Shown here in pieces: positions 45,889-64,000 of a stretch of DNA of 64,000 nt. The notes below the pieces were generated by a model. That model was not told the origin of the DNA. It did not search any database and worked only from the letters and a program-made list of their open reading frames with translations. The stretch is taken from sequence record NC_019411.1. One strand, written 5' to 3'. The position numbers and the translations under genes are program-made. Every line of letters starts with the position of its first letter. The first letter of the stretch is position 1.

Positions 45889-46665
45889 ATGGCGATCCAG
45901 AACCCCCATTCCACCACGCCCGGCACCATGCCGCACCTGACGCCCGGCGAGATCGGCGTCAACAAGGCCGACGACATCCTCTGGTTCCGCTCGCAGGGGC
46001 GCCGCGTGCCAATCATCCTGAGCGATCTTGACCGCGCCCCGCCGGCGGACGGCTATGTCGGCGCTCCCCTGACTCTGGTCGACGGCGCGCCGGCCTGGAA
46101 TGTCAAGCTCTTGCCGTCCTCGATCGTCTCCGGCGCGGTCAAGGTCGATCTCCCGCCCGCCGCCGGCCTGCACGCCGTGCCGAGCGTCCTGCTCCAGGGC
46201 CTGGGGGCCGATCGCGTCCTGGCGACCAATGATCTGGACCTCACCCCCTTCTATGTCCGCTCCGACTCCATCACCCTGACCCATCTGGCCTTCAGCGTGC
46301 GCTCGGCCGGCGCGCCGGCCATGCGCGTGGGGATCGTCGACAGCTTCGGCGTCGTCCAGGCCGACATCCTGGTCGCCGCGCCGGTCGTGGGCGCCAATGT
46401 CGTGGCCCTCTCGCCGGTCCTGACCCTCCAGCGCGGCGTCTACCGCACCATCCTGGCGACGACCGGGGCGGTGACGGTGGGGATCGCCACCGGCGCGCGC
46501 ATGGAACAGGGCTGGGACATCATCGCCGACGCGCCGTCGTTTATCCGGGGCTACAGCGGTAGCAAGAACACTGGCGGCGGCATCGGGAGCCTGCCAGCGC
46601 TCACCCCGCGCCGCGACCCCGCGCCGGGCCAGGATCACGCCGTCCTCCTGCGCTGGACGGCGTGA
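45889..46665 (+). CDS. Fibre-tip-like protein, paralogous to the C-terminus of the giant protein
   Basis: ATG 45889; LTPGEIGVN motif and TPFYV...LQRGVY domain. Confidence 0.65.
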   Translation: MAIQNPHSTTPGTMPHLTPGEIGVNKADDILWFRSQGRRVPIILSDLDRAPPADGYVGAPLTLVDGAPAWNVKLLPSSIVSGAVKVDLPPAAGLHAVPSVLLQGLGADRVLATNDLDLTPFYVRSDSITLTHLAFSVRSAGAPAMRVGIVDSFGVVQADILVAAPVVGANVVALSPVLTLQRGVYRTILATTGAVTVGIATGARMEQGWDIIADAPSFIRGYSGSKNTGGGIGSLPALTPRRDPAPGQDHAVLLRWTA

Positions 46666-46727
46666 ATCTTGACACTCGGTCGAAATGCGGTTAACCTGCG
46701 CGCTCATCTGGAGTTTCGAGCGCCATC

Positions 46728-46994
46728 ATGGCCGAGCTTGTCCGCATCTATCACCCCGAGACGAACGAGCCGTTCGACGTGATCCCGTCGACCGCCGAAC
46801 GTCTGCGCCTGGGTCAAGGTCTGGACGGTCTGGTGTGGCTCTCGCAGCCCTTCTCCCGCGCCGCTGCCGAAGAGCCGGCGCCGGAAGCCCCCAAGGGGCG
46901 AGGTCGTAAGCGCGTCGCCGCGCCCGTCTCGGACGAAGCCGAAGACGATGGCTGGCGTGACGCGCCGACCGAGGACGCTTCCGAAGCCGCGTAA
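46728..46994 (+). CDS. Hypothetical acidic protein
   Basis: GGAG SD; KGRGRKR tail resembles 32592..32975. Confidence 0.7.
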   Translation: MAELVRIYHPETNEPFDVIPSTAERLRLGQGLDGLVWLSQPFSRAAAEEPAPEAPKGRGRKRVAAPVSDEAEDDGWRDAPTEDASEAA

Positions 46995-47038
46995 GGCGCT
47001 TCCCCGTCCACTCTGCTGAAATTCGGTCTCAGTCCCAT

Positions 47039-47114
47039 GTCGGTCTAGCTCATGGGGTAGAGCGGCGGTCTCCAAAACCGCGCGTGGCAGGTTCGAGTCC
47101 TGCGACCGGCGCCA
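47039..47114 (+). tRNA. trnW: tRNA-Trp (CCA)
   Basis: Cloverleaf, loop CTCCAAA, TTCGA T-loop, CCA end. Confidence 0.9.
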
Positions 47115-47119
47115 TTTCC

Positions 47120-47194
47120 GCGTCCATCGTATATGGGTTATTGCTTCGCGTTGCCAACGCGACGAACCGGGTTCGAGTCCCGGTGGACGCTCCA
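47120..47194 (+). tRNA. trnG: tRNA-Gly (GCC)
   Basis: Loop TTGCCAA, CCA end. Confidence 0.9.
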
Positions 47195-47200
47195 ATCCAG

Positions 47201-47274
47201 GCGGATATAGCTCAAAGGGAGAGCTACTGCCTTCCAAGCAGAAGATGCGGGTTCGAGCCCCGCTATCCGCTCCA
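47201..47274 (+). tRNA. trnG: tRNA-Gly (TCC)
   Basis: Loop CTTCCAA, CCA end. Confidence 0.9.
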
Positions 47275-47295
47275 AAATTTTCTTCCACGACAAGC

Positions 47296-47324
47296 TTGAC
47301 AGCCGCCGAGATTTGTGAGAGCCT
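47296..47324 (+). promoter_or_regulatory. Sigma70-type promoter of the Glu/Asp tRNA unit
   Basis: TTGACA-N17-GAGCCT; shares TTGTGAGAGCCT with the 48092 promoter. Confidence 0.6.
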
Positions 47325-47333
47325 TCAACCATT

Positions 47334-47396
47334 ATGACGCACCTCCTGACCCGTTACGAACGCGAGGCCACCGGCCTCGATACCACCACCGCCTAA
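47334..47396 (+). CDS. Putative leader peptide MTHLLTRYEREATGLDTTTA
   Basis: ATG near the predicted +1; stop lies inside a hairpin followed by TTTT (47373-47423). Confidence 0.5.
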   Translation: MTHLLTRYEREATGLDTTTA

Positions 47397-47430
47397 AAGC
47401 GGTTCTGGTAACCGAGGCCTTTTGTCATGT

Positions 47431-47508
47431 GGCCCGGTCGTCTAGCGGTTTGCAGGATTCGTGACTTTCAATCACGAGAGCGGAGTTCGAGTCTCCGTCG
47501 GGCCTCCA
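47431..47508 (+). tRNA. trnE: tRNA-Glu (TTC)
   Basis: Loop CTTTCAA, CCA end. Confidence 0.9.
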
Positions 47509-47531
47509 CCCCCAAAGCCTCCTCTGAGCTT

Positions 47532-47606
47532 GGTGCGTTCGTATATCGGTCAATACTCCGGATTGTCGATCCGGCAAGAGGGGTTCGATTCCCCTACGCA
47601 CCGCCA
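47532..47606 (+). tRNA. trnD: tRNA-Asp (GTC)
   Basis: Loop TTGTCGA, CCA end. Confidence 0.9.
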
Positions 47607-47617
47607 GGGCTTTCCCA

Positions 47618-47776
47618 ATGCCGCTTCAGTCGGGTTCGAGCGACGCCGTCGTCTCGCACAACATCGCCAAGCTGATCGACGAGGGCTACTCCAGGGAGCA
47701 GGCCGTGGCGATCGCTCTCTCCCAGGCGCGCAAGCCGCGCCGTCCGAAGGTCTCGCGCGGCTCGCGCCGGCGCTGA
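47618..47776 (+). CDS. Small basic phage protein (MPL..GSS..VVS.NI..LI.EGY...[10 protein letters not shown] type)
   Basis: Hand-translated 52 aa; recognisable small phage family. Confidence 0.7.
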
Positions 47777-47846
47777 CCTCGCCTCGCTAAAGCACCCCAG
47801 GTTCCCGGCCTCGTCGTGAGGCCGCCTGCGGTCGCGCGAGGCTTCC

Positions 47847-48071
47847 ATGACCTTTCTTGATCTTCGTTCGCAGTCGAGCACCGCGCTCCTGCGCCATGTG
47901 TCTTCCCGATCCCCGATGGCGGAAGCGGCTCGCACCGAGTTGCTGACCCGAGGCCTCGTCCCGCTCCTCACGCGGCACAACGGCTGGCGCCTCGCCCCGA
48001 GCGAGCCCTTTCCGCAGCATCTCATCCCGCGCCCCGATCCGCTCGCGAGGTTCACGTGGCGGGCGGGATGA
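47847..48071 (+). CDS. Hypothetical protein
   Basis: GAGG SD, 74 aa. Confidence 0.5.
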   Translation: MTFLDLRSQSSTALLRHVSSRSPMAEAARTELLTRGLVPLLTRHNGWRLAPSEPFPQHLIPRPDPLARFTWRAG

Positions 48072-48091
48072 AGATTTTTCTCACGCCGTGC

Positions 48092-48120
48092 TTGACATCC
48101 GTCTGAAGTTGTGAGAGCCT
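48092..48120 (+). promoter_or_regulatory. Sigma70-type promoter of the P/T/K/L/H/A/S tRNA operon
   Basis: TTGACA-N17-GAGCCT. Confidence 0.65.
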
Positions 48121-48214
48121 GTCCAACGTCACGGATCACGACACTCCTCGGAGTGCAAAAGCGCGATCCTTCGTTATTCCCTGGACGCCAGCGGGCGTCC
48201 GTTCGAGAGCCATC

Positions 48215-48352
48215 ATGTTCGCCTTGTCGCATAACAGCCTGAGCACGAAAGCCGCCTCCCCGGCGTCGCTTTCGCTTGCCCTGCTGGCGACGGCCACGAA
48301 GCCCTCGACCAAGCCGACCACCTCGGCCTCGCACTCGACGGATCACCTCTAA
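48215..48352 (+). CDS. Attenuator leader peptide MFALSHNSLSTKAASPASLSLALLATATKPSTKPTTSASHSTDHL
   Basis: 41 of 45 residues are P, T, K, L, H, A or S, the amino acids of the 14 downstream tRNAs. Confidence 0.8.
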   Translation: MFALSHNSLSTKAASPASLSLALLATATKPSTKPTTSASHSTDHL

Positions 48353-48417
48353 GGTATCTCGTCTCGGGTGCAGGCCTTGGAGCCGCACCCGCTACCAACA
48401 TCCTGTTGACCTAGCGC

Positions 48418-48454
48418 AAGGCGGCTCCCAGCAAGGAGACCGCCTTTTCTTTTT
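48418..48454 (+). terminator. Attenuator terminator ahead of tRNA-Pro
   Basis: AAGGCGG-CTCC / GGAG-A-CCGCCTT followed by TTCTTTTT. Confidence 0.85.
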
Positions 48455-48466
48455 CGCGTTGATCAT

Positions 48467-48542
48467 CGGGGTGTAGCTCAGTCGGTAGAGCGCTCGGTTC
48501 GGGACCGAGAGGCCGTGGGTTCGAGTCCCGCCACCCAGACCA
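48467..48542 (+). tRNA. trnP: tRNA-Pro (CGG)
   Basis: Loop TTCGGGA; G2-A71 mismatch; CCA end. Confidence 0.85.
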
Positions 48543-48549
48543 ACGCCAT

Positions 48550-48624
48550 CGGGATGTAGCTCAGCGGTAGAGCGCGCGGCTGGGGGCCGCGAGGCCGCAG
48601 GTTCGAGACCTGCCACCCCGACCA
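48550..48624 (+). tRNA. trnP: tRNA-Pro (GGG)
   Basis: Loop CTGGGGG; CCA end. Confidence 0.85.
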
Positions 48625-48629
48625 ACAAT

Positions 48630-48702
48630 GCTGCTGCGCCTGGATCGGCGCCGGCCCCTTGGTATGGGGAAGTAGAAGGTTCAATTCCTTCCGGCAGCAC
48701 CA
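48630..48702 (+). tRNA. Atypical tRNA-Thr (GGT)
   Basis: GCTGCTG/CGGCAGC acceptor with G1-C72 and C2-G71; CCCC-TTGGTAT-GGGG arm; compact D region; ACC codons in the leader. Confidence 0.6.
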
Positions 48703-48707
48703 ACAAC

Positions 48708-48777
48708 GCCGATGCCTCTAGGAGGACACGTCTTTCGTAATGACGTCAGGTGGGTGCGATCCCCACTTTCGGCTCCA
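48708..48777 (+). tRNA. Atypical tRNA-Thr (CGT)
   Basis: 70 nt; loop TTCGTAA; T-loop TGCGATC; very short D arm; ACG codons in the leader. Confidence 0.55.
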
Positions 48778-48812
48778 TCAAGATGATCAAGGAGAGATCA
48801 GACGAAACAAAT

Positions 48813-48899
48813 GGATGTGTCACCTCAGTGGCGAGAGGACCGGGCTCTTAATCCGGCAGCGAAAGCTCATCGTGGGTTCGAGTCCCACCACATCCTCCA
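48813..48899 (+). tRNA. trnK: tRNA-Lys (CTT) with long variable arm
   Basis: Loop CTCTTAA; variable arm AGC-GAAA-GCT; 87 nt. Confidence 0.85.
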
Positions 48900-48906
48900 A
48901 CAATAT

Positions 48907-48996
48907 GCACGAGTGACCCGAGCGGCGAAGGGCGTCGACTTTTAATCGACTGGGCGTCCAGCCTCACCGAGGGTTCGAGTCCCTCCTCGTGCTCCA
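48907..48996 (+). tRNA. trnK: tRNA-Lys (TTT) with long variable arm
   Basis: Loop CTTTTAA; variable arm GGGC-GTCCA-GCCT; 90 nt. Confidence 0.85.
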
Positions 48997-49002
48997 AGAT
49001 GT

Positions 49003-49088
49003 GCGAAAGTGGCGGAACAAGGTAGACGCACCGGTCTCAGGTACCGGCGGCTTCGGTCATGAGGGTTCGAGTCCCTCCTTTCGTACCA
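49003..49088 (+). tRNA. trnL: tRNA-Leu (CAG)
   Basis: Class II fold, loop CTCAGGT. Confidence 0.9.
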
Positions 49089-49095
49089 ACGACAT

Positions 49096-49180
49096 GCCGG
49101 TCTGGCGGAAATGGCAGACGCAGTGGCTTCAAGTCCCACCGCCTTCGGGCGTCCCGGTTCGATGCCGGGGACCGGCACCA
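49096..49180 (+). tRNA. trnL: tRNA-Leu (CAA)
   Basis: Class II fold, loop TTCAAGT. Confidence 0.9.
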
Positions 49181-49186
49181 CCATGA

Positions 49187-49274
49187 TGCGAAGTGGCGGA
49201 ATTTGGTAGACGCACCGGCATGAGAGGCCGGCGCCCTTCGGGGCGTGAGGGTTCGAGTCCCTTCTTCGCGACCA
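49187..49274 (+). tRNA. trnL: tRNA-Leu (GAG)
   Basis: Class II fold, loop ATGAGAG. Confidence 0.85.
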
Positions 49275-49287
49275 AAGACGAGATTAT

Positions 49288-49359
49288 GCCGGCCGGCGCA
49301 GGCGCGCGGGGGAGGTTGTGTCCCTCCTTGGCTCAGTTCGATACTGAGGGTCGGTTCCA
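49288..49359 (+). tRNA. Atypical tRNA-His (GTG)
   Basis: GCCGGCC/GGTCGGT acceptor; GGAGG-TTGTGTC-CCTCC arm; CTCAG-TTCGATA-CTGAG T-arm; poor D arm; CAT/CAC codons in the leader. Confidence 0.55.
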
Positions 49360-49364
49360 GTTAC

Positions 49365-49435
49365 GGGGTATGCGCAGGGCGCAGGCATCCTTTGCAAGGA
49401 AGTCGGGGTGGGTTCGAGTCCCACATACTCCACCA
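49365..49435 (+). tRNA. Atypical tRNA-Ala (TGC)
   Basis: G3-U70 and A73 Ala identity elements; loop TTTGCAA; short D arm. Confidence 0.65.
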
Positions 49436-49439
49436 ACAC

Positions 49440-49527
49440 GGTAGGTTGGCTGAGAGGCCGAAGGCGCCCGTTTCGAAAACGGGAGAACCGCAAGGTTCCG
49501 TGGGTTCGAATCCCACACCTACCTCCA
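49440..49527 (+). tRNA. trnS: tRNA-Ser (CGA)
   Basis: Class II fold, loop TTCGAAA. Confidence 0.9.
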
Positions 49528-49531
49528 ACAT

Positions 49532-49619
49532 GGATGTATGGCTGAGAGGCCGAAGGCGCCCGCTTGGAAAGCGGGTGAACCGCAAGGTTCCGTAGGTTCG
49601 AATCCTACTGCATCCGCCA
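49532..49619 (+). tRNA. trnS: tRNA-Ser (GGA)
   Basis: Class II fold, loop TTGGAAA. Confidence 0.9.
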
Positions 49620-49623
49620 ACAT

Positions 49624-49710
49624 GGTAGGTGGTTCCGGCCTGGGGCCGGACCCGGTTGCTAACCGGCCGGAGCCGCAAGGCTTGGGGTTCGATTCCTCCT
49701 CCTACCGCCA
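49624..49710 (+). tRNA. trnS: tRNA-Ser (GCT), probable 8/4 fold with extended D stem
   Basis: Loop TTGCTAA; GGTAGGTG/CTCCTACC acceptor; GGGG/CCTC T stem; TCCGGC/GCCGGA D stem. Confidence 0.8.
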
Positions 49711-49750
49711 ACATCTCCCAGGCCTATAGCCTGGGAGGGTTTGGACATAA

Positions 49751-50239
49751 TCAGGCGTGGTTCGGAAACTCGGCGATCTCAATCCCAGGCGAGGCGCTGA
49801 CGACCAACCAGTAAGCTCCGGTCCAGCGCAAGACAACCGCAGGCGGATAGGCCGGGGCCAAGGGGGTGAGCACGGATGCCGGATCGGCGACGATAGAATC
49901 GGGCAACGGAACGATCAAGGCTGGACCGGTTTTCGCCGCCGCAGGATCACCATAACCGGAAGCGAAGACGGGGGTCTGAACGCCAGCGTCAGCCAATATG
50001 CCGAGGATAATAGGCATAGCTAAGGGCGCACTCTGCGGAGCATGTGTCCCACGAGAGAATGTGATGAAAAGTTCGTCTCCTACTTCCTTCGCGGCAGTAA
50101 GGAATCCATATCTTGCGGCATAGTCGGCTGCTCCGAATTCAGGAGAGACTTGGCTTACGAGATGGACGCGCTGCTCTCCGTTCGGGTTGACGATTTGAAT
50201 CGAAGCCTCAATACCTCGGTTCATCGTGATTGCGGTCAT
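49751..50239 (-). CDS. Hypothetical protein inserted antisense in the tRNA array
   Basis: 162 aa; GGAG SD; lower GC3 than its neighbours. Confidence 0.65.
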   Translation of the reverse strand: MTAITMNRGIEASIQIVNPNGEQRVHLVSQVSPEFGAADYAARYGFLTAAKEVGDELFITFSRGTHAPQSAPLAMPIILGILADAGVQTPVFASGYGDPAAAKTGPALIVPLPDSIVADPASVLTPLAPAYPPAVVLRWTGAYWLVVSASPGIEIAEFPNHA

Positions 50240-50313
50240 AAGTATCTCCAGCGGCTGGATGCCGCAGTGCGATACCTAAAGTCGAGTTTTCGACGTGTCC
50301 AGCCCCTTTGAAG

Positions 50314-50560
50314 TTGACACCCGCGACGCGGCCTGTCATACGTCACGACAGAGCGAACACCCCCCGGCCGGGTTTGTTGTCATACCGGGTCGTCACGCCC
50401 CGTCGGGGCTCTAGTAGCTCTTCGTGTGGAGTTTTCCGCCTCCCTCCCAGACAAGGAGGCGGACCCAACCAACATCGCGATCTCCCGTGATCGTCGGCGA
50501 CGGGCGCCGTCAGAGACCTTTGCCTGCGCGGCTCCGCTGCGGCCCTGGTCTCGTCCCGAC
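50314..50560 (+). ncRNA. Candidate structured ncRNA unit
   Basis: TTGACA promoter at 50314, several hairpins, no ATG ORF, CCA-like ends at 50471 and 50560. Confidence 0.35.
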
Positions 50561-50581
50561 CAAATTTTTTCGTCGTGGTGC

Positions 50582-50610
50582 TTGACACTGCGAAACTGTT
50601 CTGCTAGGGT
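50582..50610 (+). promoter_or_regulatory. Sigma70-type promoter of the Y/F/V/I/Q/N/R tRNA operon (leaderless mRNA)
   Basis: TTGACA-N17-TAGGGT (GCTAGGGT); leader ATG at the predicted +1 (50618). Confidence 0.7.
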
Positions 50611-50617
50611 TCACGTC

Positions 50618-50716
50618 ATGAGCAAGACCTATCGTCAATTTGTGCGCCAGATTCAGGTCGTCCGGAATATCCGGGCGGGCCGCTCGCGCATGGCTGACGA
50701 AGGGTTCAGGGACTAG
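50618..50716 (+). CDS. Attenuator leader peptide MSKTYRQFVRQIQVVRNIRAGRSRMADEGFRD
   Basis: Codons 5-19 are exclusively Y, R, Q, F, V, I, N, the amino acids of the 12 downstream tRNAs. Confidence 0.8.
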   Translation: MSKTYRQFVRQIQVVRNIRAGRSRMADEGFRD

Positions 50717-50746
50717 GTCCCACACCACGCTCAACCAGCTTTCGAG

Positions 50747-50783
50747 AGGCCCGCCTGGAAACCCCAGGCGGGCCTTTTCTTTT
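50747..50783 (+). terminator. Attenuator terminator ahead of tRNA-Tyr
   Basis: AGGCCCGCCTGG/CCAGGCGGGCCT followed by TTTCTTTT. Confidence 0.9.
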
Positions 50784-50816
50784 CCACTTTCGATCACGGA
50801 GATCACCAACAGACAC

Positions 50817-50901
50817 GGATGCTTAAAGCTGGAGGGCTCCAGCCGGGGACTGTAAATCCCCTCTCTTCGGAGGAGTGGTTCGATCCCACAAGCATCCACC
50901 A
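50817..50901 (+). tRNA. trnY: tRNA-Tyr (GTA), probable 8/4 fold with 6-bp D stem
   Basis: GGATGCTT/AAGCATCC acceptor; GTGG/CCAC T stem; GCTGGA/TCCAGC D stem; loop CTGTAAA. Confidence 0.8.
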
Positions 50902-50906
50902 ACCAC

Positions 50907-50982
50907 GGACTCGTAGCTCAGCAGGTAGAGCGCCGGCTTGAAACCCCGGAGGTCGGAGGTTCGATTCCTCCCGTTTCCACCA
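50907..50982 (+). tRNA. trnF: tRNA-Phe (GAA)
   Basis: Loop TTGAAAC; two acceptor mismatches. Confidence 0.85.
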
Positions 50983-50987
50983 ACAAC

Positions 50988-51063
50988 GCCCGATGAGCCA
51001 GATGGGAAGGCGCCGCCGTGACATGGCGGGATTGAGAAGGTTCGATTCCTTCATCAGGCACCA
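50988..51063 (+). tRNA. trnV: tRNA-Val (GAC)
   Basis: Loop GTGACAT. Confidence 0.85.
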
Positions 51064-51065
51064 AT

Positions 51066-51141
51066 GCAAGTGTAGCTCAGTCGGTAGAGCAGCGGACCGA
51101 TAATCCGCCTGTCCCTGGTTCGAGTCCAGGCATTTGCACCA
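51066..51141 (+). tRNA. trnI: tRNA-Ile (GAT), C33 variant
   Basis: Loop CCGATAA. Confidence 0.85.
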
Positions 51142-51148
51142 ATTCTGA

Positions 51149-51223
51149 TGTGGCATAGCTCAGGGGTAGAGCGCGCGCTTGATAAGCGTGAGGTCGGGGG
51201 TTCGAAGCCCTCTGCCACTACCA
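51149..51223 (+). tRNA. trnI: tRNA-Ile (GAT)
   Basis: Loop TTGATAA; U1-U72 mismatch. Confidence 0.85.
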
Positions 51224-51256
51224 GTTTCCAGGCCGGCGGAGATGCGCCGAACCTGA

Positions 51257-51332
51257 TGGCGTTTAGCATAGTGGGAGTGCAGGGGTGTCACATACCTCGA
51301 TCGAACTGGTTCGATTCCAGTAACGCCAACCA
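51257..51332 (+). tRNA. trnV: tRNA-Val (CAC)
   Basis: Loop GTCACAT. Confidence 0.85.
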
Positions 51333-51337
51333 AATGT

Positions 51338-51411
51338 TGAGGGTTCGTCTAACGGTAGGACGGCTGGGTCTGGTCCAGCTAATCTAGGTTCGAGTCCTAG
51401 CCCCTCATCCA
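51338..51411 (+). tRNA. trnQ: tRNA-Gln (CTG)
   Basis: Loop GTCTGGT. Confidence 0.85.
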
Positions 51412-51418
51412 AGTTTGT

Positions 51419-51492
51419 TCTCGGGTGGTCTAATGGTAAGACATCTGGTTTTGGTCCAGAGGATTGGGGTTCGATTCCTTGGCCGAGAACCA
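51419..51492 (+). tRNA. trnQ: tRNA-Gln (TTG)
   Basis: Loop TTTTGGT. Confidence 0.85.
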
Positions 51493-51507
51493 ACTACTTG
51501 AGTTTAT

Positions 51508-51582
51508 TCCAGTCAATGCACAAGGTGTGCAGCGGCACTGTTAATGCCTGTGAGCCCGGTTCGATTCCGGGGTCTGGAGCCA
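51508..51582 (+). tRNA. trnN: tRNA-Asn (GTT)
   Basis: Loop CTGTTAA. Confidence 0.85.
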
Positions 51583-51608
51583 ACACGCCGGCCTCGGCCG
51601 GCACATGC

Positions 51609-51691
51609 GCCCTGGTAACCGAGGGGGATTACGAATCCCTTAGTCGTAGCAGGAGTTGAAAAGGGTGGTTCGAATCCACTCCAGGGTGCCA
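51609..51691 (+). tRNA. D-armless tRNA-like RNA, anticodon ACG (Arg)
   Basis: GCCCTGG/CCAGGGT acceptor; GGGA-TTACGAA-TCCC arm; about 24-nt extra region; canonical T-arm; CCA end. Confidence 0.5.
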
Positions 51692-51698
51692 AATTCAT

Positions 51699-51781
51699 AG
51701 CGCGCAGGCCGAGCAGGATCATCGTCAGGCGTCGCCCTCCGAAGGCGAAGAGGCCCGGTTCGAGTCCGGGGCGCGCTGCCA
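51699..51781 (+). tRNA. trnR: tRNA-Arg (CCG) with enlarged D loop
   Basis: Loop CTCCGAA; 17-nt D loop. Confidence 0.8.
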
Positions 51782-51784
51782 TCC

Positions 51785-51862
51785 GCGCGGGTAGCTCAAT
51801 GGACCCAGAGCAGCCGTCTTCTACACGGTGGGTTGGGGGTTCGAGTCCCTCCCCGCGCGCCA
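51785..51862 (+). tRNA. trnR: tRNA-Arg (TCT)
   Basis: Loop CTTCTAC. Confidence 0.9.
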
Positions 51863-51865
51863 AAC

Positions 51866-52200
51866 TTGACGGGCGATGTCGAATCGCCCAGGATCAAACC
51901 GTAGGCCTCTTCCCGTGGGCCTGACATATACGTCCGCCAGCACTGCCATTCCGCGTCAGCGGGCGCGGCGCGAGGAGGGTTAACCCCTCGTTGTCGTGCA
52001 GCCGGGTGGTGTGGACGTCCCAACGTGATCTTCGAACGCGGCATGCCGTGGAGGGGTGATCGGATGGCGAACCAAGGGACACCTTCTTATCCTGGCCTGG
52101 GCCGCATGGGGCTCCGCTGGGAGAAACGGCCTGACCCGACCGGAGGTGCGTCCAGGATGCCGGCTCTCCATGCCAGAGTCTCGTGGACTAGGGTCTGAAA
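51866..52200 (+). ncRNA. Candidate structured ncRNA at the end of the tRNA operon
   Basis: About 330 nt with several hairpins, a long-range GGCATG/CATGCC stem and no convincing ORF. Confidence 0.35.
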
Positions 52201-52219
52201 TTTTTCTGGCGCTGATGTG

Positions 52220-52351
52220 TTGACACTCCTCGGAGGCTCGTCTAAAACCAGCAGCGTCAGAGCGGCGTTGGACCACGAGGTCCGCCGCGAGCTTCTGCGT
52301 TGTCGTCAGGAACGGCCCGCCAGCAATCCCGCTGGCGGGTCGTTTCGTTTT
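52220..52351 (+). ncRNA. Candidate ~95-nt sRNA (promoter, hairpin, terminator)
   Basis: TTGACA-N17-TAAAAC; GCGGC..GGACC/GGTCC..GCCGC hairpin; terminator AACGGCCCGCCAGC/GCTGGCGGGTCGTT followed by TCGTTTT. Confidence 0.45.
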
Positions 52352-52471
52352 GGGCGCAATGCGACGTTCAGTCCAACCATGGGTAGTGTCATGAATCTTG
52401 ACTTTCGGCGCTTATTCCGGTAGCTTTCCCGACATCAGCAAACGCTCACAAGTCGGGGACCGAGAGCCGTC

Positions 52472-52888
52472 ATGTCGCAAGACCACAACGGCTCGTCCTC
52501 GGGCCAAGAACGCATCTACCAGAAACTGGATGAGCTTGGCTCCATGCACGCGCGCACCCGTGAAGATATTGCCCGCATCCAGGAGATGATGCGAGCGGTC
52601 GGTTCGTCGCAGGAGCGGATCGAAAAGCGCCAGGACCATTTCGAGCGCGAAATCTGGCGTGAGATGGAAGACCGCGCCGCGCGCACGAGCGCCCAACTCG
52701 ACGAGATCAAGAGCCACACCAACCTGCGCATCGAGGAGATCGAGGCCAAGGTCGACACGATCCGCGAGGAACGGATCGCCGAGAAGGCCCAGTGGCGCGG
52801 CCCCGAGAAGGCCATCGCCGCCCTGGTCGCCGTCGCCGGGGCCATCGCCGCCTTCGCCACGATCCTCACTTTCCTGAAGGGACACTAG
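52472..52888 (+). CDS. Coiled-coil protein with C-terminal membrane anchor (holin-like/XhlA-like topology)
   Basis: Heptad-rich body; AIAALVAVAGAIAAFATILTFL tail; function not established. Confidence 0.6.
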   Translation: MSQDHNGSSSGQERIYQKLDELGSMHARTREDIARIQEMMRAVGSSQERIEKRQDHFEREIWREMEDRAARTSAQLDEIKSHTNLRIEEIEAKVDTIREERIAEKAQWRGPEKAIAALVAVAGAIAAFATILTFLKGH

Positions 52889-52995
52889 GACTTATAGTCA
52901 AGCTTGGGTGCCTGCGGCCAGAAGTCGCGCTTCTTGACACCCGATCTGGGCCGGCATAACCATAGGGCCATCGTTCCTGGGTGGAGTTTTCCCTA

Positions 52996-53202
52996 ATGGC
53001 TGTCGCGCTTACTGTCGTCTCGGTTGAGACCGAATCTACCATCCAAGGTGTTGATCCCGACGCGGCGCATGTCCGCCTGATCGAGGTCCTGCATACCGCC
53101 GCAGAAGCGGGTCTTGGGGAAATGACGTTGGAAGTCAAAGCGGAGATCGCGGCGCTGCTCCAGCAGGCGTCCGTGGAACTCTCCCACTGCCGGCCGGTGT
53201 AG
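52996..53202 (+). CDS. Hypothetical protein
   Basis: GGAG SD. Confidence 0.55.
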   Translation: MAVALTVVSVETESTIQGVDPDAAHVRLIEVLHTAAEAGLGEMTLEVKAEIAALLQQASVELSHCRPV

Positions 53203-62000: not shown

Positions 62001-64000
62001 AACTTCAAGAAGGACCTGGAGCCGCTCAACTTCAACGACCTCTTCAAGCGCGCCGCCGCCCTGGCCGACGGCAGCTTCGCGCGCACCGCCGCCGCGTCCA
62101 AGCCGGGTGGCATGATGGCGCCGCCGGCCGTGGCGACGCAACAGACCGCCGCCGCCGTCAAGGCGACCATCGCCTCGATGGGCGATCGCGTGTACGCGAC
62201 GGCCGGGCAGCATCTCGGTCAGACCGAGGCCAAGGACGCCGCGTCCCTGCAAGCCTACTTCAAGGCCAACGGCGTCACCATCGATCCCAAGAAGCTCTCC
62301 TGGTGCGCGGCCTTCGTCAACGCCGTCCTGGCCCAGAACGGGCTCTCGGGCTCGGGCTCGCTGGCGGCCTCGTCCTTCAAGGACTATGGCGACGAGGTCT
62401 CGCGCACCGACGCCCGCAAGGGCGACATCGTCGTCCTCAAGCCCCAGGCGGCGGGCGCGACCGGTCACGTCGGCTTCCTCGACGGCTTCGACCGCTACGG
62501 CAATGTGCGGGTGCTGGGCGGCAACCAGGGCGCGGCCGGCGGCGGCGGCGTCAACGTCTCGACCTTCGCCTCCAATCAGGTCGTCTCCTTCCGCCGCACG
62601 GGCAGCGGCGGGGCCTCCAACTTCCTGGGCGGCGGCATCACCGAGGCCCAGGGCGAAGAAGGCGGCTCGCGCTACGAGCGCCGGATGAACGCCTTCAAGG
62701 CGCTCGGGACGATCACCGGCCAAGCCTCGCCGGCCGCCGACGCCCTGGCCGACTACCAAGGCAACCTCGAAAAGCTGCGCGACATCATCGTCTCGGAAGA
62801 GAAGCTGCTGAAGGACGTCGGGGCCGACGGCCAGTCGTTCTTCAACAAGACTAACCTGGAAGCCCTGGTCGCCGCTCAGAAGAAGTGGAACCGCTCGATC
62901 GTCGAGGCGCTCAACCCGATCGCCAAGGAAGCCCGGACCCTGTCTGAGGCCAACGACGTCCTGCAATTGCGCGCCAAGGGCCTGTCGCAGGAAGCCGACT
63001 GGCAAGAGCGTCTGACCGAACTGCGCAACTCCGGCATCAATGTCGACCTGATGCAGGATGAGGCCAAGTGGACCCAGTACCTGAACGAGTTGAAGAAGCA
63101 GGGCCTGGAGATCGACGTCAAGGCCCTGCAACTGAAGCCGGACGAACTGCGCTACCAGCAGGGTCGCGCCGAGGCGCTCCAGGCTGAACTCGACCTGACC
63201 AAGGCGCTGAACGACGCCAAGCTGGCGGGCATCGCCCGCACCGGCTCCAGCTACGACCGCACCCTGTCGGGCCTCGTCGCTGGCAAGGGCCGCGACGGCG
63301 AGACGCTCGACCAGACCCGCCAGCGTCTGGCGGGTTCGGTTGGCAGCGATGGCCGCAACGCGCTGGAGGCCCTGCAAGAGCAGGCCGGCGTGATGGAAGG
63401 CTCGCGCATGGCCGACGTCAAGGCCAGCATGCAGTCGCAGCTTGAGATCATGCGCGAGAGCGCGCGCCTCAACAACACCCAGCGCGGCATCTACGACGAC
63501 TACCGCAACATCCTGGGCGAACTGCTGAACAAGCAGGGCGCCTCGCTGAAGGAACTGCTGGACTCGGCCGACGAGGAGACCAAGCGTCTCGCCCAGTCGT
63601 TCGTCCGCGCCAAGGCGGACTTCGAAAACCCGCCCGGCTTCCAGAAGTGGGCCGACTCCCTGGAGCCGCTGAACAAGCGCCTCCAGGACATCAAGGCCAA
63701 CTTCCTCGACAACTTCTCCGGCGGCATCACCGATGCGCTGCTGGGCGAGAAGGTCGACTGGAAGGCGATGCTGCACGACACCTTCAAGCAGATGCTGCGC
63801 GCCCAGGTCGATGAGGGCCTCAAGAGCCTCACCTACAAGCTGCTCGGCCAGGGCGGCGACCAGGGCGCGGCCCAGACCCCGGAAGCCCAGGCGCTGGTCT
63901 CGGCGGCCGATGTCCAATTGCAGGCCGGCAACAGCCTGCAACAAGCCGCCGCGAGCCTGATGCAGGCGGCCCAGACCACCGCGACCGCCGGCGCGGGCGG
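59058..64000 (+). CDS. Tail tape measure protein (3'-partial) with embedded NlpC/P60-CHAP-like hydrolase domain
   Basis: ATG 59058, open to the window end; tape-measure motif LSQAMAKGKISSEEFNRQIGEQIPG near 60330; WCAAFVN...GHVGF...LGGNQ at about 62300-62530. Confidence 0.9.
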   Translation, partial: MDSEALKLKIDSSQARTDLDALAKSLDRASKAAGAMQSNLAKGVDKSNEALSRGAKNIEKFARVTAELSKVKLSGDPAKQLTEFANAVSAVARAREISAAKLNGLSKFVQVGAAISKLRFTGESFSGLHALTQAMDEAGRARAVSAAKLKSFVDYMEVAARASRLRFSSQTSEALKSLASAMDAVARSRVVSPQKLAAFKELFATLATAKGVPNAGAIARDLDTIAGAASRAAKAMAELKGARSGMGSMRASGGAGGGGGIASGASSNVKRFNEEVAKVKGHTDNASKGVDGLGKGLGLLTGRFNLSYQAGTLFSALFSSFTFGQLVKGIYDTTVSFQKLNKAMLFVTGTYAGAHKATQDFIDISVQLGASVEDNADAYSRFAISSAAAGLKLADVNKIYKSTQLALTAVGANSEQVGYAFYGLSQAMAKGKISSEEFNRQIGEQIPGNAQAGARALSKLTGQQKSVADLFDEMRKGTLQSAPFLKAWADEINRMFAPLLPEAEKRPDFQLNKLKTAFSLWKKEVGQSQFIGALTTQFKKLSDMLIVVEGDHYVLTERGRKLADSFGKGLAQAVNILGNALAWLADNLDKVVAVIKVIGALAIGNEFAKWGRQVAAFADNMLGVKRAIEEVSVAETTASGKRAVTSKAGAVNAVSTVASDRMAMATNRTRNAVMGGTFVANAVAPAVRQSPQFSQLSYLTGNPTSPTRGAPTFGRRQPYTGTMTFDARPAGRAGGMGGLFAAMGSGAATAATGAFTGLRKALNVLPGVALGAAVALAIFGNSITKLNDKAVSYNNIAAGALGTAGDEIGNGMTGLINGIRGLFGAQQKAQGTGDWLVDLSATLIVFGKAIFTLATTLGKILGTLMANVIIPWIELGQKVASGDLKGAAGKAGEVLMGQIGKGNRERWAELGKELGKDWGKALDYAGTRQSIVNGALKSAAGDSAAQQGANAAEKMTEAALAQMKAADQQALAAADLKDATANFKKDLEPLNFNDLFKRAAALADGSFARTAAASKPGGMMAPPAVATQQTAAAVKATIASMGDRVYATAGQHLGQTEAKDAASLQAYFKANGVTIDPKKLSWCAAFVNAVLAQNGLSGSGSLAASSFKDYGDEVSRTDARKGDIVVLKPQAAGATGHVGFLDGFDRYGNVRVLGGNQGAAGGGGVNVSTFASNQVVSFRRTGSGGASNFLGGGITEAQGEEGGSRYERRMNAFKALGTITGQASPAADALADYQGNLEKLRDIIVSEEKLLKDVGADGQSFFNKTNLEALVAAQKKWNRSIVEALNPIAKEARTLSEANDVLQLRAKGLSQEADWQERLTELRNSGINVDLMQDEAKWTQYLNELKKQGLEIDVKALQLKPDELRYQQGRAEALQAELDLTKALNDAKLAGIARTGSSYDRTLSGLVAGKGRDGETLDQTRQRLAGSVGSDGRNALEALQEQAGVMEGSRMADVKASMQSQLEIMRESARLNNTQRGIYDDYRNILGELLNKQGASLKELLDSADEETKRLAQSFVRAKADFENPPGFQKWADSLEPLNKRLQDIKANFLDNFSGGITDALLGEKVDWKAMLHDTFKQMLRAQVDEGLKSLTYKLLGQGGDQGAAQTPEAQALVSAADVQLQAGNSLQQAAASLMQAAQTTATAGAG

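Follow-up and report, generated by a model that had tools for sequence, protein, structure and literature searches.

The DNA stretch analysed here (the window, 64,000 nt) corresponds to bases 1-64000 of Caulobacter phage CcrSwift, with 100% identity to NC_019411 and identical coordinates; CcrSwift is a phiCbK-like prolate siphophage (Dolichocephalovirinae, Shapirovirus). The transfer RNA (tRNA) region of the window contains three leader modules, each lying ahead of its own tRNA array (47296-47419; the module of leader A; 50582-50784), and we focus here on leader A, an open reading frame (ORF) at 48215-48352. On the plus strand, a conserved, putative promoter is followed by this ORF, a strong terminator and, after 11 nt, the first of 14 tRNA genes. 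In the GenBank record of CcrSwift, the ORF is labelled gp342 ‘hypothetical protein’ and positions 48420-48444 are labelled ‘predicted rho-independent terminator’. The elements of the module are as follows:

48070-48118, plus strand: putative promoter, with an A/T-rich UP-like tract (48070-48081), the -35 element TTGACA (48092-48097) and TGTGAGAGC, an extended -10-like element (48110-48118)
48125-48214, plus strand: 5' untranslated region (UTR) of ~90 nt, with two conserved hairpins (48141-48154, CACUCCUCGGAGUG; 48183-48200, GGACGCC-AGCG-GGCGUCC) and the Shine-Dalgarno (SD)-like GAGAG (48205-48209)
48215-48352, plus strand: leader A ORF of 45 codons (gp342, phrog_12742, function unassigned); codons 8-42 all encode P/T/K/L/H/A/S, and codons 2-34 are the putative sensing zone
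48325-48338, plus strand: segment A, GGCCU-C-GCACUCGA, i.e. the final leader codons; pairs with segment B over 13 bp with one bulge; invariant in eight phages
48339-48363, plus strand: ‘stop hairpin’, lying within A:B; its apical loop contains or adjoins the stop codon UAA (48350-48352)
48364-48376, plus strand: segment B, UCGGGUGCAGGCC; the partner is A (ON) or C (OFF)
48379-48391, plus strand: segment C, of which GCACCCG (48385-48391) pairs with B and GGAGCCGC (48379-48386) pairs with D, forming the antiterminator
48390-48416, plus strand: middle hairpin, formed in either state within the loop between C and D
48420-48456, plus strand: intrinsic terminator, with D GGCGGCUCC (48420-48428), a loop, E GGAGaCCGCC (48435-48444) and a U-tract (48445-48456) that has UUUUCUUUUU at 48445-48454
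48467-49710, plus strand: tRNA array, i.e. Pro-CGG, Pro-GGG, Thr-GGT, Thr-CGT (doubtful), Lys-CUU, Lys-UUU, Leu-CAG, Leu-CAA, Leu-GAG, His-GUG, Ala-UGC, Ser-CGA, Ser-GGA and Ser-GCU

The translation of leader A (MFALSHNSLSTKAASPASLSLALLATATKPSTKPTTSASHSTDHL) leaves the set P/T/K/L/H/A/S only at M1, F2, N7 and D43, so that 41 of the 44 residues after the initial Met lie inside it, and these are exactly the seven amino acids covered by the tRNA array. With 35 codons, the uninterrupted run from codon 8 to 42 exceeds every other such run in the six frames of the 64 kb, the runner-up reaching 17; translation and six-frame scan therefore bear out the composition on which the original prediction was built. 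For comparison, the same seven residues make up a fraction of 0.449 of the phage's long ORFs, in which no window of 35 residues contains more than 27 of them, and the composition signal is present in a single frame only. Each of the 14 tRNAs has a cognate codon in the leader, and 35/44 leader codons are cognate to the array; among random 44-codon gene windows, such coverage and such a number of cognate codons occur with P=3e-4 and P<2e-5, respectively. When leader A is compared with the neighbouring array (set 3) instead, only 1/11 tRNAs and 1/44 codons match, which makes the match to its own array specific.

A compositional fluke in a GC-rich intergenic region has to be considered here, as spurious long ORFs are common in GC-rich DNA, the antisense ORF 47594-48388 being an example. 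However, several independent tests returned probabilities of 1e-4 to 1e-9, and the pattern is replicated in the sister modules and in distant phages (see below), so that chance or artefact is left with hardly any probability. The antisense ORF itself (minus strand, 264 codons) overlaps not only leader A and its promoter but also two genes upstream; none of the relatives has it annotated, its composition is Arg-rich and typical of an off-frame reading, and we treat it as spurious, i.e. probably an artefact of the high GC content.

Predicted fold switch and proposed attenuation

The helices A, B, C, D and E and the U-tract lie where the original prediction had placed them and pair as it had claimed. 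The terminator combines a 9-bp GC-rich stem with UUUUCUUUUU and, except for its loop, is invariant in eight phages, while the antiterminator sequence GGAGCCGC (48379-48386) pairs with GCGGCUCC (48421-48428), i.e. with the 5' arm of the terminator. At the other end of the module, transcription of leader A probably starts near 48125. The putative promoter is kept in the eight phiCbK/Rogue-like phages, and the pattern TTGAC-N15-21-GAGAGC has three occurrences in the window, compared with an expectation of 0.29, two of them ahead of tRNA leader modules (47296 and 48092) and one on the minus strand (62294-62320), which is consistent with a promoter function at 48070-48118. A generic sigma-70 and terminator scanner called neither the promoter nor the terminator of leader A; it is built on E. 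coli-like criteria, and the bulged stem escaped its terminator rule. The ORF has an ATG at 48215 with GAGAG 6 nt upstream.

Folding was predicted at equilibrium with ViennaRNA, the ribosome being represented by 31 nt masked around its A site. For 48215-48445, either with no ribosome or with the A site at codon 12, 20, 28 or 33, the pairing probabilities were ~0.97 for A:B, 0.98-1.00 for C:D and <=0.01 for D:E (terminator 0.003); with the ribosome at the stop codon, they were 0.98 for B:C and 0.88 for D:E. The mutually exclusive helices that had been proposed for segment A masked and unmasked are thereby reproduced, the terminator going from 0.003 to 0.88. A scan over all positions showed that A:B and C:D dominate for an A site at codons 2-34 and B:C and D:E from codon 36 onwards, with the change-over between codons 34 and 36. 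Only 2/300 dinucleotide shuffles of 48300-48419, with the terminator kept, had a switch of >=0.5. The 137-nt core (48320-48456) folds with z=-5.5, and both its minimum-free-energy and its centroid structure are the antiterminated form. In the minimum-free-energy fold of the full-length transcript, GGAGUGC of the first 5' UTR hairpin can pair with segment A.

Between the end of the U-tract (48456) and the start of tRNA-Pro (48467), there is no room for a promoter; at least the first tRNAs are therefore reachable by read-through only. Most of the computational tests support the interpretation given in the original prediction, and we consider the module to be probably a ribosome-mediated transcription attenuator, by which transcription of the tRNA array would be made to depend on stalling at the codons that the array serves. 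This reading is based on sequence features, conservation, set-constrained peptide evolution and the switch found in silico, and it is from these that we infer translation of the leader peptide, use of the promoter, the kinetics of coupling and the response to tRNA supply.

In such an attenuator, transcription would start from the promoter near 48092-48118 and leader A would be translated behind the advancing RNA polymerase. With plentiful aminoacyl-tRNAs for Pro, Thr, Lys, Leu, His, Ala and Ser, the ribosome would arrive at codon >=36 or at the stop codon and cover segment A, whereupon B would pair with C, D would be free for E and transcription would terminate 11 nt before tRNA-Pro (OFF). A ribosome stalled in codons 2-34, or never loaded, would leave A to pair with B and C to capture D (GGAGCCGC:GCGGCUCC); no terminator would form and the 14 tRNA genes would be transcribed (ON), i.e. 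phage tRNAs would be supplied on demand. Owing to the odd number of segments, read-through would be the default when no ribosome lies over A, and termination would need a ribosome that keeps pace to the end of the ORF. As any stall upstream of A would give read-through, codons irrelevant to the array would have to be avoided, which may explain the uninterrupted run of 35 in-set codons. The label ‘his-type’ in the original prediction is therefore only a loose analogy, given the five segments and the read-through default without translation.

Leader A in related phages

An ORF of 38-48 codons with an ATG or GTG start was found in 13/13 Dolichocephalovirinae phages examined. The closest group comprises eight phiCbK/Rogue-like phages (Swift, Karma, phiCbK, Ccr10, RBC57, Rogue, BL10 and BL57), in which the module is 94-97% identical (97% over 48300-48466, 94% over the whole leader region). 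Their ORFs differ by 14 amino-acid variants, all of them inside the set (N7 becomes L), and by a three-codon insertion. For several of these variants (T to L, S to K, A to L, K to S and T to H), two to three nucleotides must have changed, only three variants are synonymous, and the product of the neighbour-based null probabilities is 7e-7. In the Brevundimonas phages, 17/18 amino-acid variants stay in the set, as do 31/32 across the CbK-like phages (n=13), and the leader indels found in relatives measure 3 or 9 nt and preserve the frame. These substitutions support the view that evolution of the leader peptide is constrained in composition, not in sequence.

The more distant lineages were located by tblastn with the neighbouring gp076, and the ORF was found at the same place in each of them. 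The leader reads MTF(S/L)THKPSTLKPATGAASLAHASLLTPATSKPSLSRSL in Colossus/PW and MTRIHTTLPTAKPASTGALTLASWPASSKPLLRHSAVLA in CcrSC/BL9, and an example from the Brevundimonas phages is (V)TKLSHKLSLHSTAASALSTLAYAPATLSPKSPTTGGVTSATETI. Among these orthologues (Colossus/PW, CcrSC/BL9 and six Brevundimonas phages), the ORF has 38-45 codons, 32-38 of 38-44 residues are in the set, and each detected downstream tRNA has a cognate leader codon (11/11 to 15/15); the codons outside the set are concentrated towards the 3' end, in the sequence that gives rise to segment A and the stop hairpin. SD-like purine tracts also precede the start in the orthologues of Colossus, CcrSC and the Brevundimonas phages (the lineages read). 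Further relatives were sought in IMG/VR, which returned known isolates only, and in a metagenome scan, which gave no match.

At the RNA level, the region downstream of the ORF differs in sequence in the divergent lineages and again offers A:B, B:C, C:D and D:E, and the Brevundimonas phages examined have a canonical terminator before the array. The shape of the stop hairpin is kept with other sequences in the Rogue/BL10 type, Gurke, Marchewka, Kabachok and Bajun, and changes in codons 43-45 are compensatory at the RNA level, the last three codons varying together with their stop-hairpin partners. Two compensatory pairs are present in the phiCbK/Rogue group, both in accessory hairpins; in the middle hairpin, an A-U to U-A exchange (alignment columns 98/108) is found in 3/7 distinct sequences (RBC57, Rogue and BL10). 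When segment A is masked, the free-energy difference between the two states, dG(ON-OFF), shifts towards termination by +5 to +7 kcal/mol in Swift, +6 to +8 in Rogue, +5 to +6 in Colossus and +3 to +5 in Marchewka, in all four of which the switch is predicted, and by +4 in Gurke, where it is marginal.

Several observations weigh against attenuation by leader A. The claim that codon choice follows the anticodons stood only in so far as all 14 tRNAs have at least one cognate codon and 35/44 codons are cognate, for the match does not go beyond amino-acid composition: random synonymous recoding with the phage codon usage gives full coverage in 21% of cases (P=0.21), i.e. synonymous choice is no better than chance, and the absence of CTA, TTA, TCA, ACA and CCA is therefore ordinary bias towards G or C at third codon positions. 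In addition, six Ala codons of leader A are GCC, which is not strictly cognate to Ala-UGC. Of the ‘14 matching tRNAs’, 13 are firm, while Thr-CGT is doubtful and may be impaired or defective in CcrSwift, because it carries a G at the conserved T-loop position 55. Conservation or covariation of the helices in relatives, which the original prediction had named as decisive, was obtained in part: the topology is kept in divergent lineages, but within the phiCbK/Rogue group the core helices A:B, B:C, C:D and D:E are invariant and thus show no covariation, and the equilibrium switch is absent from the folding predictions for CcrSC/BL9 and Bajun, with no shift in dG(ON-OFF) for CcrSC and one in the wrong direction for Bajun. 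Moreover, the full transcript of 330 nt is predicted to be bistable without a ribosome, its minimum-free-energy fold being terminated and its centroid antiterminated, and the hairpin lacks a canonical U-tract in Colossus/PW, CcrSC/BL9 and XM05, an Erythrobacter phage described below. Finally, the very high nucleotide conservation of the ORF also fits a function at the RNA level.

The last point leads to the possibility of an element that works through RNA only, i.e. a small RNA that stops at the terminator, or a switch under the control of a protein, a tRNA or the kinetics of transcription, with the ORF untranslated and its composition a by-product. The leader is more conserved (97% and 94%) than the aligning blocks of the wider tRNA region, which show 87-88% identity between Swift and the Rogue group, and the scarcity of synonymous variants, the strong structure, the predicted bistability without a ribosome and a nearby promoter-plus-terminator unit without an ORF (52220-52346) could all be accommodated in this way. 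Nevertheless, where the ORF varies, in its middle, the substitutions remain in frame and in the set and the indels measure 3 or 9 nt, and even very divergent lineages retain the start codon, the SD-like tract and the position of the stop codon in a hairpin loop. The composition signal, confined to one frame, also tracks the downstream tRNA set, including that of XM05, and an Rfam cmscan of 46000-53000 at E<=1 detected no T-box (RF00230), no His, Thr, Leu, Trp or Phe leader and no other family, the only matches in the module being tRNAs. An RNA-only element is therefore unlikely.

The missing U-tracts bear on another alternative, in which the leader is read by ribosomes and its folds govern 5' processing (by RNase P or RNase E), precursor stability or shielding from Rho rather than termination. 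Colossus/PW, CcrSC/BL9 and XM05 keep the alternating helices and the leader without a clear U-tract, so that the regulated step in these phages may not be intrinsic termination, and the first tRNA begins, in its mature form, 10-25 nt after the hairpin. In contrast, Swift, the Rogue-like phages and all Brevundimonas phages examined have a textbook intrinsic terminator (a GC-rich stem of 9-13 bp followed by 8-10 U), and the antiterminator overlaps exactly the 5' arm of that terminator. As an account of leader A, a step other than termination is thus quite improbable.

Sister modules and the match of leaders to tRNAs

Default ARAGORN detected 10 tRNAs in 48467-49619 behind leader A, and relaxed settings added Thr-GGT (48630-48702), His-GTG (~49287-49359) and Ser-GCT (49624-49710), whereas Thr-CGT (48708-48779) was recognisable only via alignment to relatives. 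The non-canonical CcrSwift tRNAs missed by default detection and by GenBank are Thr-GGT, Thr-CGT (with G55), His, Ser-GCT, a Tyr tRNA (50806-50890) and two Arg tRNAs (51609-51691 and 51699-51781). Both tRNA-Lys genes (48813-48996) measure 87-90 nt and have a long, class II-like variable arm, which is unusual for tRNA-Lys; homologues of this long type also occur in relatives, even in Ruegeria and Rhodobacter phages. Rogue-type phages have been published as lacking Ser tRNAs, but we found three non-canonical Ser tRNA-like genes after tRNA-Ala in Rogue, BL10 and BL57.

The two sister modules of the window are composed as follows:

50582-50890: module 3 (‘leader 3’), with a promoter at 50582, an ORF at 50618-50716, a terminator at 50748-50784 and tRNA-Tyr at 50806-50890; the array extends to 51862
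47296-47419: module 1b (‘leader 1b’), with a promoter at 47296 and a 20-codon ORF at 47334-47396, ahead of tRNA-Glu (47431) and tRNA-Asp (47532)

The leader 3 ORF starts within a few bases of the probable transcription start and encodes MSKTYRQFVRQIQVVRNIRAGRSRMADEGFRD, with the core YRQFVRQIQVVRNIR, in which the rare A/T-ending codons TAT, CGT, CAA, TTT, ATT and AAT are used. It is unannotated in CcrSwift and in most records examined, RBC57 labelling it as a hypothetical protein. Its array consists of Tyr, Phe, Val, Ile, Gln and Arg tRNAs, of which 11/11 are covered by the leader, with 18/31 codons cognate (P<2e-5); as in leader A, synonymous codon choice is no better than chance (P=0.19). 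The RNA has a classical, trp-like layout of four segments (1:2/2:3/3:4), in which a copy of the terminator 3' arm within the ORF (CCGGGCGGGCC) can pair with the 5' arm and is sequestered unless a ribosome is near codons 11-13. In module 3 of Bajun, the ORF copy and the terminator 5' arm have changed together (G to A and C to U), a compensatory change that supports the putative antiterminator of this module. The Brevundimonas phages add a tRNA-Asn to the array and have two or three AAC codons in their leader 3. The tRNA-Ile at 51508-51582 has the anticodon AAT (A34), which is rare in bacteria, and the matching rare ATT codon is present in leader 3.

The ORF of leader 1b starts at or near the probable transcription start, and a Glu-x-Glu motif and Asp codons, ahead of tRNA-Glu and tRNA-Asp, are kept in the lineages examined. 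Its stop codon is located in the loop of the terminator hairpin, and its logic may therefore differ from that of leader A.

Leader content also follows tRNA content between phages. CcrSC and BL9 have a tRNA-Trp at the end of the array and a TGG codon in the leader. The codon AAA, which accounts for 6% of the Lys codons of the phage, is found in the leader of exactly the eight phages that encode Lys-UUU and is absent in the five with only Lys(CUU); the number of independent events behind this match is probably only two or three. Erythrobacter phage XM05 (accession number PV416404) offers the strongest replicate: its positions 118-357 contain a TTGACA/TATACT promoter, a leaderless ORF of 26 codons (154-234, MFTQTALHLLTQTPLYCQWQYSCSSL), a hairpin and a tRNA array (Ser, Tyr, Leu x3, Thr, His, Gln x2, Ser, Cys, Trp). 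In this leader, 22/25 codons belong to the set of its own array (binomial ~3e-9 at a background of 0.30, the codons not all being independent because part of the ORF is a palindromic hairpin), and the ratio of Q/C/W to K/P/A is 7:2, compared with 0:14 in Swift leader A (Fisher P=1.5e-4). The terminator of XM05 comes after the first tRNA, not before it. No leader-like ORFs were found ahead of the tRNA arrays of two unrelated DSS3P8-like Rhodobacterales phages, i.e. Ruegeria phage V10 and Rhodobacter phage RcXuper.

These comparisons also bear on whether gp342 might be a real small protein, i.e. a low-complexity, P/T/S/A-rich or membrane peptide, with the terminator leaky and the tRNA match coincidental. 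Many genomes carry it as an annotated coding sequence, it constitutes a PHROG, P, T, S, A and L abound in high-GC proteomes, and the peptide is recognisably conserved (LSHK..., KPST...). However, the peptide accepts non-conservative replacements (S to K, L to P, A to L, K to S and T to H) but no exit from the set, in-set residues number at most 27 in any 35-residue stretch of the phage's proteins, and the two other leaders and that of XM05 match their own, different tRNA sets. A search of 5.8 billion proteins revealed no homologue of the gp342 peptide outside these phages, the hits being phiCbK-like leaders only, plus one Logan contig identical to RBC57, and the only PHROG to which gp342 belongs is of unassigned function. 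A signal or membrane peptide is unlikely, too, because the sole hydrophobic stretch tolerates prolines (L to P and A to P, in addition to L to S). We therefore regard a small protein as highly improbable; the probable role of gp342 and its orthologues is that of regulatory leaders, not of proteins.

Extending attenuation from leader A to the other modules, there is, in our estimate, a somewhat better than even chance that the CbK-like phages (Dolichocephalovirinae and at least one Erythrobacter phage) have their tRNA genes split into operons, each gated by its own leader peptide that reads codons for the tRNAs of its operon; together, these ribosome-mediated attenuators would act as a homeostat of tRNA supply. 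On the practical side, the annotation can be corrected: two sister leaders are unannotated in most records examined and several non-canonical tRNAs are missing from the records.

Two further units of the window stand apart from the leader modules. At 52195-52346, a promoter (an A/T tract and TTGACA at 52220) and an annotated terminator (52309-52346) are separated by ~95 nt without a leader-type ORF, and no tRNA follows; this unit is a candidate small RNA. In the other unit (50314-50480), a highly structured stretch devoid of ORFs comes after a conserved, promoter-like TTGACA and ends in a hairpin and CCAACCAACA. This end resembles the 3' ends and spacers of the tRNAs, and the stretch may represent a tRNA-like or minihelix RNA.

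Relation to known systems

In the phiCbK genome paper (PMC3556154), tRNAs and predicted terminators are listed, Rfam is said to have given no functional RNA beyond tRNAs, and the word ‘leader’ does not occur; an RNA-seq study of the infection does not mention tRNAs or terminators (PMC10688885). A full-text literature search found no description of leader-peptide attenuation of tRNA genes or phage tRNAs, an absence that is not proof of absence. While the class of mechanism is known, its use on tRNA genes, a leader for seven amino acids and a read-through default are new.

Why phages carry tRNA genes and how their expression is timed is an open question, to which a sensor of demand would offer a direct, on-demand answer. 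If the homeostat exists as proposed, it would be the first leader-peptide attenuation of tRNA genes and the broadest multi-amino-acid leader known, with seven. The phage could then switch on replacement tRNAs only when host tRNAs are limiting, e.g. upon host shut-off or under attack by tRNA-targeting defence nucleases. Classical attenuation would thereby be extended from amino-acid metabolism to the tRNA pool, and it would be the read-through default that allows a leader peptide to integrate seven amino acids.

Phage tRNA clusters, such as those of T4, T5, jumbo phages and phiCbK, are likewise large arrays whose anticodons fit the phage codon usage. T-box riboswitches, which are typical of Firmicutes, bind uncharged tRNA directly, with neither ribosome nor ORF; like them, the CcrSwift module would couple tRNA charging to the choice between terminator and antiterminator before translation-related genes, but it contains no specifier loop and no T-box motif. 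The E. coli pheST attenuator, with its leader pheM, controls phenylalanyl-tRNA synthetase and senses a single amino acid. Here as there, attenuation would be applied to a component of the translation apparatus, whereas the products in CcrSwift are the tRNAs themselves, i.e. the very molecules that are read in the leader.

The leader-peptide attenuators of amino-acid operons in enterobacteria (his, thr, leu, ilvGMEDA, pheA and trp) are among the closest counterparts; several amino acids are sensed in thr (Thr and Ile) and ilvGMEDA (Ile, Leu and Val). With these, leader A shares a short leader rich in sensed codons, an intrinsic terminator and exclusive antiterminator and terminator helices whose choice by ribosome position is, in CcrSwift, predicted, and sister module 3 even has the classical four-segment layout of trp. 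In contrast to them, the leader of CcrSwift would sense seven amino acids over ~33 codons, the element resides in a phage, and its five segments would give read-through rather than super-attenuation when the leader remains untranslated. Above all, the regulated genes encode tRNAs rather than biosynthetic enzymes, so that tRNA supply and not amino-acid supply would be restored; it is in these regulated tRNA genes that the module departs from every described leader-peptide attenuator known to us or found in our search.

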